A DNA stretch of 64,000 bases from sequence record PQ898399.1. One strand, given 5' to 3'. Of this stretch, positions 4,189-64,000 are shown one piece after another. The first letter of the stretch is position 1. Every line of letters starts with the position of its first letter. The notes beneath the pieces are model-generated. The model was given only the letters and a program-made list of their open reading frames with translations. It was not told the DNA's origin and made no database searches. The translations under genes and the position numbers were made by a program.

Positions 4189-4196
4189 TATAAATA
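4189..4196 (+). promoter_or_regulatory. T4-type late promoter upstream of rIII
   Basis: Exact TATAAATA. Confidence 0.85.
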
Positions 4197-4313: not shown

Positions 4314-4568
4314 ATGTCAATGAACAAACAACTTGAACACGCTCTGCATCTGCAGCGCAACTCCTGGAACGCAGGTCACGATAACTACGGTGCATCAATC
4401 GACGTTTACGCCGAAGCACTGGAAGTTCTGAAAGGTTTCAAACATCTGAATCCTGTTCAGGCAGACCTCCGCGATGTACTTGCTCTGAAAGATGAGCTGA
4501 AGTTTGCTAAACCTCTGTGTTCAGCAGCTCGTAAAGCGGTTCGTCATTTCGTAGTGACTCTGAAGTAA
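4314..4568 (+). CDS. rIII: Lysis inhibition accessory protein RIII
   Basis: KQLEHALHLQRN..YGASIDV..ARKAVRHFVVTLK; GAGG at 4301. Confidence 0.95.
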   Translation: MSMNKQLEHALHLQRNSWNAGHDNYGASIDVYAEALEVLKGFKHLNPVQADLRDVLALKDELKFAKPLCSAARKAVRHFVVTLK

Positions 4569-4619
4569 TTATGTCATGGTTGTAGGTCATCCCGACGTTA
4601 AATAAATCAAAACCTCCAG

Positions 4620-4870
4620 TGATACGCTACTAAAGTGCGAACTTGAAAATAAACGGCAAGTGCATGCTACCCCGAGGCGATGGCTAATCGGGAGTACGCC
4701 TCAAGGCCTATACATCCATCGGTGTATATCTTATCCTCGAGAAATCGGACCCGGACCCTTTAAGCTAACGGTGTGCAACAGATAAGAGTTTAAACGTACC
4801 CCTTGAGGGCTTGCGGGAACTGACAACATGTACGTGTAGGATGTTCCCATGTATTTCTCCAAAATGGAAG
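4620..4870 (+). ncRNA. Candidate structured RNA or cis-regulatory leader between rIII and 30.9
   Basis: No plausible ORF; several perfect helices read by eye (see findings). Confidence 0.5.
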
Positions 4871-4877
4871 ACTAAAA

Positions 4878-5057
4878 ATGGCTAAACAAACTAAAGCAAA
4901 AACTGCAGTAAAAGAAGTTGTTGGTACCTCTAAACGCGCTGGCTACAAGCGTGGGTCTAACTCTCGTATTAATCCATTGGCTGACCAGCTAGCATCTCGC
5001 GCTCGCAAAGTTATTGCTCATGATGCTGCATTTGGTAATCCACGTAAGAAAGCATAA
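4878..5057 (+). CDS. 30.9: Gp30.9, small Lys/Arg-rich protein, 59 aa (absent from the ORF track)
   Basis: Hand translation MAKQTKAKTAVKEVVGTSKRAGYKRGSNSRINPLADQLASRARKVIAHDAAFGNPRKKA; SKRAGYKRGSNSRIN as in T4 30.9. Confidence 0.9.
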   Translation: MAKQTKAKTAVKEVVGTSKRAGYKRGSNSRINPLADQLASRARKVIAHDAAFGNPRKKA

Positions 5058-5068
5058 AGCATAAGTTC

Positions 5069-5095
5069 GGGACTCCTTCGGGAGTCCCTTTTTTT
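5069..5095 (+). terminator. Rho-independent terminator
   Basis: GGGACTCC-TTCG-GGAGTCCC followed by T7. Confidence 0.92.
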
Positions 5096-62243: not shown

Positions 62244-62331
62244 GGGGAGTTAATTCCGTAGAGGTAGCGGTGCAGACTGTAAATCTGTTGTCATTGCGAC
62301 TCGGGTGGTTCGACTCCATCACTCCCCACCA
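62244..62331 (+). tRNA. tRNA-Tyr(GTA)
   Basis: Acceptor GGGGAGT/ACTCCCC, loop CT-GTA-AA, long variable arm, encoded CCA. Confidence 0.95.
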
Positions 62332-62337
62332 AATTCA

Positions 62338-62413
62338 GGGAATATAGCTCAGTTGGTAGAGCAAACGACCGATAATCGTTAGGTCACTGGTTCGAGTCCA
62401 GTTATTCCCACCA
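62338..62413 (+). tRNA. tRNA-Ile(GAT) with C33
   Basis: Acceptor GGGAATA/TATTCCC, stem AACGA/TCGTT, loop CC-GAT-AA, CCA. Confidence 0.93.
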
Positions 62414-62449
62414 ATTTGCTTAAAGATATTTTTGATATTATAAATATCT
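62414..62449 (+). promoter_or_regulatory. Overlapping middle and late promoters inside the tRNA cluster
   Basis: ATTTGCTTA 62414-62422, TATTAT 62436-62441, TATAAATA 62439-62446; inverted repeat AGATATTT/AAATATCT. Confidence 0.8.
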
Positions 62450-62451
62450 AC

Positions 62452-62528
62452 AGGACACTAGCTCAGCTGGTTAGAGCACCGGACTTTTAATCCGGGTGTC
62501 GAAAGTTCGAATCTTTCGTGTCCTACCA
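62452..62528 (+). tRNA. tRNA-Lys(TTT)
   Basis: AGGACAC/GTGTCCT, CCGGA-CTTTTAA-TCCGG, CCA. Confidence 0.95.
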
Positions 62529-62529
62529 A

Positions 62530-62604
62530 TCTCCGTTCGTCTATCGGTTAGGACGCCGGCCTTTCACGTCGGAAAGAAGAGTTCAATTCTCTTACGGAGA
62601 ACCA
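62530..62604 (+). tRNA. tRNA-Glu(TTC)
   Basis: TCTCCGT/ACGGAGA, loop CT-TTC-AC, CCA. Confidence 0.94.
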
Positions 62605-62609
62605 AATTT

Positions 62610-62694
62610 GGGTCGTTGGCTGAGAGGGTAAGCGGCGGACTGTTAATCCGTGTCAGAAATGACTAGGCAGGTTCGATACCTGCACGACCCGCCA
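62610..62694 (+). tRNA. tRNA-Asn(GTT) with long variable arm
   Basis: GGGTCGT/ACGACCC, loop CT-GTT-AA, extra arm GTCA-GAAA-TGAC, CCA. Confidence 0.93.
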
Positions 62695-62696
62695 AA

Positions 62697-62800
62697 TATA
62701 GAAATCAGAAGACGTTCTGATAAGTCGTCGGCACTTTAATCCCTGTCTGTGAGTTCCCTCAACGATAACTACACAGTCCAAATTAAATACGGCGCCGAAA
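62697..62800 (+). ncRNA. rnaD: Probable homologue of T4 stable RNA D (species II)
   Basis: AGAAA-hairpin-TAAGTCGTCGG 5' part and ACGGCG 3' part match my recollection of T4 rnaD; helices 62704-62721, 62724-28/62789-93, 62747-55/62767-76. Confidence 0.6.
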
Positions 62801-62801
62801 G

Positions 62802-62934
62802 TTTACTTTCGGAGTATATTGATGAAGTTATTGCGTTAATGAAGATTATATCTGTGCACGGGTATATGAGAGCCAATAACGCCTATTCAGCTTTCCGGAA
62901 GGCTTGAGGGTAATCCCATACTCACGAAAGTAAA
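62802..62934 (+). ncRNA. Unassigned structured RNA X1
   Basis: 16-bp closing helix with one bulge plus internal helices; directly 5' of tRNA-Asp. Confidence 0.55.
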
Positions 62935-62937
62935 TTT

Positions 62938-63013
62938 GGACCTATAGTTTCAGCGGTGAAAATACTCGCCTGTCACGCGAGAGTCACGGGTTCGAATCCC
63001 GTTAGGTCCGCCA
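62938..63013 (+). tRNA. tRNA-Asp(GTC)
   Basis: GGACCTA/TAGGTCC, CTCGC-CTGTCAC-GCGAG, CCA. Confidence 0.95.
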
Positions 63014-63025
63014 AATACGAGGCAG

Positions 63026-63160
63026 TTCTTGAAGATGAGTTTGAGTCCTATAAGATAATGCCGAGGACGAAGCTGTTTGTTCCCACGGGATAAGCTCTAT
63101 ATTCGGAAGATTATATCTTTAGCGTGTTCTACATCAAGCTACTTGTTAGTACTTCAAGAA
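63026..63160 (+). ncRNA. Unassigned structured RNA X2
   Basis: TTCTTGAAG/CTTCAAGAA closing helix, AGTTTGA/TCAAGCT, GTCC/GGAC, AGCT/AGCT. Confidence 0.55.
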
Positions 63161-63170
63161 TCCGGATAGA

Positions 63171-63247
63171 TGCGGGTTAACTTCAGTTGGTAGAATGACG
63201 GGTTCATATCCCGTTACGCGATGGTTCGAGTCCATCACCCGCCTCCA
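63171..63247 (+). tRNA. tRNA-Met(CAT), initiator-like
   Basis: T1:C72 mismatch, three G:C pairs in the anticodon stem (ACGGG/CCCGT), loop TT-CAT-AT, CCA. Confidence 0.85.
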
Positions 63248-63253
63248 AATAAT

Positions 63254-63329
63254 TGGGGTATAGCCAAGTTGGTAAGGCAGTAGATTTTGATTCTACGATT
63301 CCCTGGTTCGAGTCCAGGTACCCCAGCCA
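63254..63329 (+). tRNA. tRNA-Gln(TTG)
   Basis: TGGGGTA/TACCCCA, loop TT-TTG-AT, CCA. Confidence 0.95.
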
Positions 63330-63333
63330 AATT

Positions 63334-63430
63334 AGAGTGTAACGGTAAGTCCATTTATCGGAAGTGCGAACCGCGCGATAGCTGCCAATGCATAAATGGT
63401 TACTCCGTACAAGACTGGGACTCTCACTCT
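63334..63430 (+). ncRNA. Unassigned structured RNA X3
   Basis: AGAGTG/CACTCT, GTAA/TTAC, CCATTTAT/ATAAATGG. Confidence 0.5.
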
Positions 63431-63451
63431 TCTTAAATAAGCTGTCACATC

Positions 63452-63540
63452 AATATTTACTTGACGCGTCTACAAGGGTTGAACTGATCACTCTTCTCTC
63501 AATTTCGTGTGAAGGCATCATGATTGCTGGAGTGAATATT
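63452..63540 (+). ncRNA. Possible structured RNA X4
   Basis: AATATTTACTT/GAGTGAATATT closing helix just 5' of tRNA-His. Confidence 0.35.
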
Positions 63541-63543
63541 AAT

Positions 63544-63619
63544 GTGGCCGTAGTTCAGTTGGTAGAACTCGAGATTGTGATTCTCGTAGCCATGGGTTCA
63601 ACTCCCATCGGTCACCCCA
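63544..63619 (+). tRNA. tRNA-His(GTG)
   Basis: GTGGCCG/CGGTCAC, C73, loop TT-GTG-AT, CCA. Confidence 0.94.
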
Positions 63620-63623
63620 ATTC

Positions 63624-63715
63624 GGAAGCGTGGTAGAGCGGCTTATTACACCGGTCTTGAAAACCGGAGGCCGTAGTGATACGGTCCGTGGGTTCGAATC
63701 CCACCGCTTCCTCCA
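63624..63715 (+). tRNA. tRNA-Ser(TGA)
   Basis: GGAAGCG/CGCTTCC, loop CT-TGA-AA, long variable arm, CCA. Confidence 0.95.
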
Positions 63716-63719
63716 TTTT

Positions 63720-63793
63720 AGGTCTCTCGTATAGTGGTATTATCCTGAGCTCCAACCTCAGTGACGTGGGTTCGATTCCTACGGGGCCTGCCA
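63720..63793 (+). tRNA. tRNA-Trp(CCA)
   Basis: AGGTCTC/GGGGCCT, CTGAG-CTCCAAC-CTCAG, CCA. Confidence 0.92.
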
Positions 63794-63797
63794 AATT

Positions 63798-63940
63798 ATC
63801 GGTTCGAGGAATTGCCTAAGCCGTAAGCCGAGTAGCGTTTTTGACGGAACGTTCGGATATGGTAGAGGCATGGCCTTCATAAGATAAATTGTGACGTCAA
63901 TCGCAATTTAACCTGGTTCGAATCCAGGCGTTCCGTACAA
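63798..63940 (+). ncRNA. rnaC: Homologue of T4 stable RNA C (species I)
   Basis: GCCGTAAGCCGAGTAGCGTTTTTGACGGAACGTTCGGATATGG core as I recall from T4 rnaC; tRNA-like 3' end with T-arm CCTGG-TTCGAAT-CCAGG. Confidence 0.8.
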
Positions 63941-63943
63941 ATT

Positions 63944-64000
63944 GCATCCATCGTATAGCGGCTATTATGACTGGCTTCCACCCAGTAGATGAGAGTTCGA
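63944..64000 (+). tRNA. tRNA-Gly(TCC), truncated by window end
   Basis: ACTGG-CTTCCAC-CCAGT anticodon arm; T-loop begins GTTCGA. Confidence 0.88.

Follow-up and report, generated by a model that had tools for sequence, protein, structure and literature searches.

Several small structured RNAs and regulatory RNA elements have been described in T4-type phages. T4 itself has two stable RNAs, rnaC (species 1, 139 nt) and rnaD (species 2, 119 nt), whose biological roles are still unknown (PMC3014915). The translational operators of T4 include the pseudoknot of gene 32 mRNA and the hairpins that sequester the Shine-Dalgarno sequences of e, soc and 49 (PMC3014915), and the PeSLs of T4-type phages are cassettes composed of an early promoter and a stem-loop (Arbiol 2010; Comeau 2014; PMC4122927). 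Here we describe an RNA of about 143 nt, located between the genes rIII and 30.9 in a 64,000-nt stretch of sequence record PQ898399.1 (the whole of this stretch is called the window below). Neither this RNA nor its fold matches any described family; the claim of novelty covers family and fold, not mechanism.

The new RNA, which we call the core RNA, resembles rnaC and rnaD in being a small RNA of T4-type phages of comparable size. However, rnaC and rnaD sit in the tRNA cluster, T4 has both of them and lacks the core RNA, and the best score that they obtain with our covariance model is 0.1 bits with filters off, which indicates that they are not homologous to it; the 3' end of rnaC, judged by eye, is like a tRNA T-arm. 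The hairpins that precede 30.9, namely SL4 and the one over the Shine-Dalgarno sequence, may be translational operators of the T4 kind; the core RNA differs from such operators in that it is separable from 30.9 and forms a cassette of its own. PeSLs have their likeness in modX and modY, two short conserved stem-loop modules next to the core that also occur in differing order among related phages, whereas the core is a folded RNA of 143 nt and not a regulatory cassette, and no sigma-70-type promoter was found in the gap, 4569-4877, in which it resides.

Likenesses can also be drawn to RNAs outside the T4 group. The pRNA of the phi29 family is a phage RNA of about 120-170 nt, in which complementary loops covary and pair between molecules to build a ring. 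Two complementary and covarying loops are present in the core RNA as well, but no model of the Rfam library, which may or may not include one for pRNA, was matched in any scan, and the T4 packaging motor works without RNA. The aptamers of SAM-I, cobalamin and lysine riboswitches share with the core RNA a closing helix, a multi-way junction, a pseudoknot or kissing loop, and many invariant unpaired nucleotides; unlike them, the core RNA has no constant downstream gene and no expression platform, and one of its sites lies between convergent genes.

The gap between rIII and 30.9

At this locus the window is 100% identical to Enterobacter T4-like phages SonariX and vB_Ecl_id4496, and the Karamvirus group is close. 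The SonariX record has 248,734 bp, as opposed to about 172 kb in its relatives. Another record, "Aeromonas phage PS49", is 93% identical to the Enterobacter phages across the region. Length and host label of these records (PQ898399.1 and PP212877.1) may need checking. Genes follow in the order cd, 31, rIII, then a gap of 309 nt, 30.9, and a strong terminator (Table 1). Far away, at 62244-64000, the same strand carries a cluster of 12 tRNA genes, the last of which is truncated by the end of the window.

The first-pass annotation, which was made by a model from the letters of the window, had picked out the gap as a long, relatively GC-rich non-coding interval with many helices, followed by 30.9 and its terminator. 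Coordinates and GC count agree with this: the gap has 45.3% GC, against 40.1% in the window, and falls within the top 6% of 309-nt windows, while the core RNA reaches 49.7%. The terminator is genuine, with a T-run after its stem, and all eight helices on the list of the first-pass annotation are exact in sequence and coordinates.

Table 1. Features at and around the rIII-30.9 gap; coordinates are positions in the window.
Feature	Coordinates	Strand	Description	Support
Late-promoter box	4189..4196	+	TATAAATA, T4-type late-promoter consensus, 5' of rIII	
rIII	4314..4568	+	Lysis inhibition accessory protein; gene 5' of the gap	phrog_1457, E 7.6e-41
modX	4571..4615	+	Stem-loop cassette plus GTTAAATA tail, outside the RNA core; seen in the single-sequence fold	
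modY	4618..4650	+	Small stem-loop (CGC...GCG)	
Core RNA	4650..4792	+	Structured RNA core, ~143 nt, closed by P0 (4650-4654 with 4788-4792)	Covariance model, covariation
5' domain	4655..4708	+	P1 4655-4657/4706-4708; Pa 4668-4675/4688-4696, bulged A4693; pseudoknot Pb 4676-4678/4698-4700	
Loop-loop (kissing) pairing	4678..4721	+	CGATGG 4678-4683 (Pa loop) with CCATCG 4716-4721 (whole Pc loop)	
Pc hairpin	4709..4728	+	4709-4715/4722-4728	97.6% paired, 4 compensatory pairs
3' domain	4729..4787	+	Pd 4729-4735/4781-4787 around Pe 4737-4740/4745-4748 and Pf 4751-4753/4769-4771	
SL3	4795..4815	+	Hairpin (GTACCCC-TTGA-GGGCTTG)	Single-sequence fold; unique in the window
SL4	4815..4848	+	Hairpin (GGGAAC/GTTCCC), 30.9 5' UTR	Fold -12.4 kcal/mol, z -1.6
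30.9	4878..5057	+	59 aa, basic; neighbour, not partner	phrog_1427
Terminator	5069..5095	+	Intrinsic, 3' of 30.9; 5069-5088 plus T-run	

Comparative evidence for the fold

Folding energies are unremarkable when compared to shuffled sequences, with z of -0.55 (+ strand) and +0.24 (- strand) for the 309 nt, and of -0.48 for the core. Helices predicted from a single sequence are thus no better than chance, and the evidence for a fold must come from relatives. We built a covariance model from 25 sequences, using nested helices alone, and then realigned 36 distinct homologues to it. The model (R1) finds one copy only in the window, at 179.6 bits. Across the 36 homologues, the full model of 45 pairs has 97.6% standard pairing. 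Compensatory changes are seen at 36 of the 45 pairs. None of 500 column shuffles reached any of the five measures used, and sliding the partners by 1-3 columns reduced pairing to 30-43%. RNAalifold finds the nested helices independently.

In the fold supported by these data, P0 joins both ends of the RNA at a perfect four-way junction of P0, P1, Pc and Pd, in which there are zero unpaired bases. All five pairs of P0 are compensatory. P1 leads on to Pa, and the loop of Pa is engaged twice, in a pseudoknot of 2-3 bp and in a 6-bp pairing with the entire loop of Pc. The latter is complementary at six of six positions in every one of the 36 sequences, and comes in six versions (CGAUGG/CCAUCG, UGAUGG/CCAUCA, CUAUGG/CCAUAG, CAAUGA/UCAUUG, UGUAUU/AAUACA and UGCAUU/AAUGCA). 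Both P0 and the loop-loop pairing are absent from the covariance model, so that the alignment cannot have favoured either of them. By its sequence, the loop-loop pairing may form within one molecule or between molecules, either of which is compatible with the observed complementarity.

In the 5' domain, all eight pairs of Pa are compensatory, and the C-G of P1 is replaced by U-A or U.G in relatives; the short pseudoknot Pb is 92-95% paired, with one compensatory pair. In the 3' domain, compensatory pairs number six in Pd, four in Pe and two in Pf, and the junction of these three helices carries a 33-nt stretch (4749-4781) that is invariant across the first 25 homologues. Copies from the Slopekvirus clade have a few base changes in this stretch, which are compensated at paired sites. 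Recurrent G.U pairs are seen on the + strand only (for example, U.G in 28 sequences), indicating that the folded strand is the one transcribed together with rIII and 30.9.

No reading frame is conserved across the homologues, and the 45-codon open frame of the window is shortened to 15-34 codons in many of them. For this reason a 41-aa ORF at 4660-4785 was considered and rejected. In several public records, short "hypothetical protein" ORFs are annotated over the RNA (ACG-C40_0208a, COW86c_228, SHINKOU_222/221 and JC221_170); given the lack of a conserved frame, these annotations are probably spurious.

Judged by covariation counts, four helices on the list of the first-pass annotation belong to this fold: CCCGA/TCGGG, TATACATC/GGTGTATA, TCTTATC/GATAAGA and the CGA-loop-TCG hairpin. 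In the last of these, only the stem is upheld, whereas the proposed GAAA tetraloop gives way to TAAA, GTAA, U-rich or longer loops in relatives. GAGGCG/CGCCTC persists only in the reduced form of the pseudoknot Pb and not as a full helix, and GGGAAC/GTTCCC turns out to be a separate hairpin in the 30.9 leader that covaries by eye (GGGAGC/GCTCCC and GCAGG/CCTGC in relatives). Two helices did not survive. ACTTG/CAAGT shows no covariation, its CAAG being invariant even where the upstream complement is missing. The long-range helix CCTCAAGG/CCTTGAGG (4699-4706 with 4801-4808), which competes with GAGGCG/CGCCTC and had been taken as the signature of a switch or pseudoknot, has changes in either partner that are uncompensated, and there is no such complementarity in the copy of phiEap-3; its 3' partner is part of the autonomous hairpin SL3, which is also present in T4, where there is no core. 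There is accordingly no support for the "switch" signature, and the "pseudoknot" signature is supported. The weak hairpin over the Shine-Dalgarno sequence of 30.9 is present in the single-sequence fold, which was obtained for this sequence only. P0, P1, Pf and the 6-bp loop-loop pairing were missing from the list. The idea of a structured non-coding RNA with a pseudoknot is accordingly well supported by covariation, but its extent is that of the core, smaller than the 309-nt gap to which it had been assigned.

Searches for known families were negative, in agreement with the first-pass annotation, which had been unable to match the RNA to a named family. None of the 4227 covariance models of Rfam 15 matched at the gathering threshold, and positions 4640-4820 remain empty even at E<=10; the divergent copy from phiEap-3 gave two Rfam matches, both at chance level. 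No tRNA or tmRNA was found, either with ARAGORN or with the corresponding Rfam models. The conserved run CAAG-N-GCATGC at the 5' side, followed by a pseudoknot, resembles the beginning of E. coli tmRNA pseudoknot 1; helix registers are different, and, with Rfam and ARAGORN negative, we attribute this resemblance to chance. For self-cleaving ribozymes (hammerhead, twister, twister-sister, pistol, hatchet, HDV-like, glmS, hairpin and VS), the same library-wide result applies: no Rfam family was matched at E<=10, whichever of these classes the library includes. Full-text literature searches on the invariant sequence, on RNAs of rIII and 30.9, and on structured RNAs of Straboviridae found no description. 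The RNA is unmentioned in the text of a survey of phage RNAs (PMC10690425), though it may be among the more than ten thousand unnamed candidates of that survey. With Rfam, ARAGORN, the comparison to rnaC and rnaD, and the literature all negative, we treat the core RNA as a new RNA family.

Distribution of the RNA and exchange of cassettes

BLAST searches with the sequence of the gap retrieved 404 phage records, and only the middle part, about 4654-4788, is common to all of them. The core is about 95% identical in Dhakavirus (JS98), Tequatrovirus (ACG-C40), Jiaodavirus (phages of Klebsiella) and Karamvirus; it is recognisable in Tegunavirus (fHe-Yen9-01), and identity is 82% in the 76-kb phage PKM.Lu.22.1, which belongs to another family (Grimontviridae). 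A second clade of about 20 records, found with the divergent JC221 sequence as the query, includes Slopekvirus (phiEap-3, K41P2, CPRSA) and Pseudotevenvirus (GAP161). Pattern scans of viral and metagenome contigs gave further copies; additional 18-mer matches in viral contigs were not detected by the profile of the core, and were dismissed as chance. Sequenced phages that carry the core number about 400, with hosts in Escherichia, Klebsiella, Enterobacter, Yersinia, Serratia and other Enterobacterales. When 185,579 species genomes were scanned twice for exact patterns, there was no true match (none in the first scan, and 19 in the second, all failing the model), and BLAST against E. coli genomes and plasmids produced no match; so far, this RNA is found in phages only.

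Across its genomic settings, the RNA has no constant neighbour on the 3' side. In T4, rIII, 30.9 and the flanking stem-loops are all present, and the covariance model finds nothing between them; JS98 looks like T4 into which the core has been put, between CTTGAATGT and ATGATGACG. The copies of Slopekvirus, Pseudotevenvirus and JC221, an unclassified Yersinia phage, come after uvsY and uvsY.-2, and have neither rIII nor 30.9 next to them. The next annotated gene in four Slopekvirus and Pseudotevenvirus records is uvsW.1, on the opposite strand, and no convincing ORF was found between the RNA and uvsW.1 in those genomes; JC221 has an annotated ORF of 39 aa 3' of the RNA. In PKM.Lu.22.1, neither tblastn nor a profile search of all ORFs found homologues of 30.9 or rIII, and comparison to the 64-kb window revealed no other common DNA. 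A gene for a sigma-70-family factor with regions 2 and 4 (927-1481 of the locus examined) lies 3' of the RNA in this phage; this being a single case, we claim no connection between the two.

Comparison of these genomes shows the RNA to be a discrete and evidently movable cassette, which is present or absent with sharp edges and is exchanged among phage lineages. At the rIII locus, phages whose cores have 90-100% DNA identity share only 50-80% identity in the flanking proteins; this difference points to very strong constraint, to recent exchange of the cassette, or to both. Part of the extreme conservation of the sequence could thus reflect recent horizontal spread instead of constraint.

The rest of the gap is a mosaic of smaller modules (modX, modY, SL3 and SL4, at 4571-4650 and 4795-4848), and their order around the core varies among phages. 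This resembles the shuffling of PeSL cassettes, except that an early promoter is not evident. The modX cassette is 5' of the core here, 3' of it in JS98, and stands without the core in T4; modY is likewise 5' of the core here and 3' of it in PKM.Lu.22.1 and JC221, and its stem covaries by eye (TGC/GCA in PKO111, TAC/GTA in JS98 and T4). A hairpin of the type GTACCC-loop-GGGGCTTG is found 3' of the RNA at both the rIII and the uvsY loci. In the window this is SL3, a candidate 3'-end or weak terminator hairpin that would accompany the RNA; T4 has SL3 without the core, and in PKM.Lu.22.1 a canonical terminator takes the place where a hairpin of the SL3 type would be. In many phages, inserts of about 45-60 nt, such as modX, modY and others, part the RNA from the next hairpin.

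Slopekvirus phages have about 200 nt more of conserved non-coding sequence 3' of the RNA. A second conserved non-coding stretch, of about 125 nt, is seen between the hairpin of the RNA and the bidirectional terminator where uvsY and uvsW.1 meet (1690-1815 of the phiEap-3 locus examined). This stretch is common to Slopekvirus and JC221, partial in two records, devoid of annotated ORFs, and absent from the window. It may represent a further structured RNA.

Transcription, possible functions and significance

The late-promoter motif TATAAATA has 18 matches on both strands of the window, with 4.0 expected. Early, middle and late promoters have been reported for rIII of T4 (PMC9409239), and transcripts with the RNA are likely to come in part from the box 5' of rIII in the window. 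No promoter adjoins the RNA itself at this locus, and it may therefore act only within the rIII-30.9 mRNA. At the uvsY locus, a box like that of late promoters (TATAAATA, CATAAATA or AGTAAATA) precedes P0 in all five copies, by 6-9 nt as read by eye, a spacing that suits a late transcript starting at or just before P0. In the window the RNA would be co-transcribed with rIII from promoters upstream of that gene, its 3' end being formed at SL3, either directly or by trimming; in other genera, the copies at the uvsY locus would be made from a late promoter of their own.

The explanation that we prefer, and consider probable, is that 4650-4792 on the + strand encodes an autonomous structured non-coding RNA and not a cis-acting leader. 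Such an RNA would not regulate the next gene in cis; it might, to put it more weakly, act in trans on a conserved factor, protein or small ligand, that belongs to the Enterobacterales host or to the infection. The self-closed fold, a late-promoter-like box of its own at one locus, the lack of a constant downstream gene and the transfer of the RNA alone all fit an RNA that requires no phage-specific protein partner and is probably host-acting. Counting against an autonomous RNA are its folding energy, which does not surpass that of shuffled sequences, the lack of an adjoining promoter at the rIII locus, the possible part of recent spread in its conservation, the 39-aa ORF annotated 3' of it in JC221, and the extra conserved non-coding sequence of about 200 nt in Slopekvirus. 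The narrower proposal that it binds a host factor in trans is argued by exclusion, and, even if the RNA is granted to be autonomous, we hold it only tentatively, as a serious possibility somewhat short of an even chance.

Other explanations have to be weighed against an autonomous RNA. If the core were a ligand-sensing aptamer that controls the downstream gene (30.9 in the window) through SL3 or the Shine-Dalgarno hairpin, this would account for its architecture, in which a closing helix, a multi-way junction, a pseudoknot and numerous invariant unpaired bases recall an aptamer, and also for the hairpin that stands 3' of the RNA in every context, including the canonical terminator between the RNA and the sigma-factor gene of PKM.Lu.22.1. 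A riboswitch is nonetheless very unlikely, considering that the genes 3' of the RNA have no relation to each other (30.9, a sigma factor, or none annotated) and that the next annotated one is, in the four Slopekvirus and Pseudotevenvirus genomes, on the opposite strand; that inserts of variable length precede the hairpin in many phages, which in the form of SL3 exists in T4 without the RNA; and that the competing helix does not covary and no riboswitch family is matched. A fixed position in a 5' UTR, combined with an expression platform overlapping the closing helix, was looked for and not found. It is quite unlikely, too, that the RNA is a self-cleaving ribozyme or some other processing element cutting the rIII-30.9 transcript. 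Several classes of self-cleaving ribozymes are common in phage intergenic regions, where a complex conserved fold such as this one would be in place, and at the rIII locus, with no adjacent promoter, processing would be needed if a discrete RNA exists. On the other hand, most classes of small self-cleaving ribozymes are smaller than about 143 nt, no ribozyme in Rfam is matched even at E<=10, and at the uvsY locus the late-promoter-like box a few bases 5' of P0 makes 5' cleavage unneeded.

The first-pass annotation had proposed that the RNA and the protein encoded downstream form one module, either an autoregulatory leader of 30.9 or a ribonucleoprotein of the RNA with basic Gp30.9. The RNA does adjoin 30.9 in every rIII locus that was checked, Gp30.9 is small and basic, and hairpins lie over the 5' UTR and Shine-Dalgarno sequence of its gene. 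The distribution of the RNA, however, rules against this proposal and largely refutes it: constant linkage of the RNA to a partner gene is broken in T4, which keeps 30.9 and the hairpins of its UTR without the RNA, in the uvsY-locus phages, where the RNA is elsewhere, and in PKM.Lu.22.1, where the RNA is found without 30.9. We give it hardly any credence. As for constraint that acts not on RNA but on single-stranded DNA (such as a signal for priming or recombination) or on the 41-aa ORF as a small protein, the two together are barely worth entertaining. It is true that G.T pairs are tolerated in folded single-stranded DNA, that one of the loci is near uvsY, and that small ORFs are annotated over the element in public records; but no frame is conserved, some indels are not multiples of three, and a late-promoter-like box is directly upstream at the uvsY locus, while pseudoknots, kissing loops and four-way junctions with invariant unpaired bases, as observed here, are typical of RNA.

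An autonomous RNA might also turn out to open a new functional class among phage RNAs, whose members would need no dedicated phage protein; this we regard as unlikely, though not negligibly so. The RNA alone moved to an unrelated phage family with no other detectable DNA similarity, and this fits a function that needs host components only. One form of such a class would be a ribozyme of a new kind, or an aptamer that stands alone and, for example, soaks up a host metabolite or an immune signalling molecule; another would be a homo-oligomer assembled, as pRNA is, via the covarying 6-bp loop-loop pairing. Homo-oligomers are reportedly formed also by ROOL and GOLLD.

T4 and its relatives are among the best-studied viruses. 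Nevertheless, a review of 2010 knew of no functionally characterised riboswitch or small trans-acting RNA in T4, and suggested that relatives might supply candidates (PMC3014915). The core RNA answers this description, and the comparative support for it is unusually strong; its conservation exceeds that of the flanking protein genes, and it has moved alone to an unrelated phage family. Many of the phages that carry it are candidates for therapy, and several of their public records mis-annotate small ORFs over the RNA. RNAs of such structural complexity are usually catalysts, sensors or scaffolds, and this makes the core RNA a direct, testable lead.
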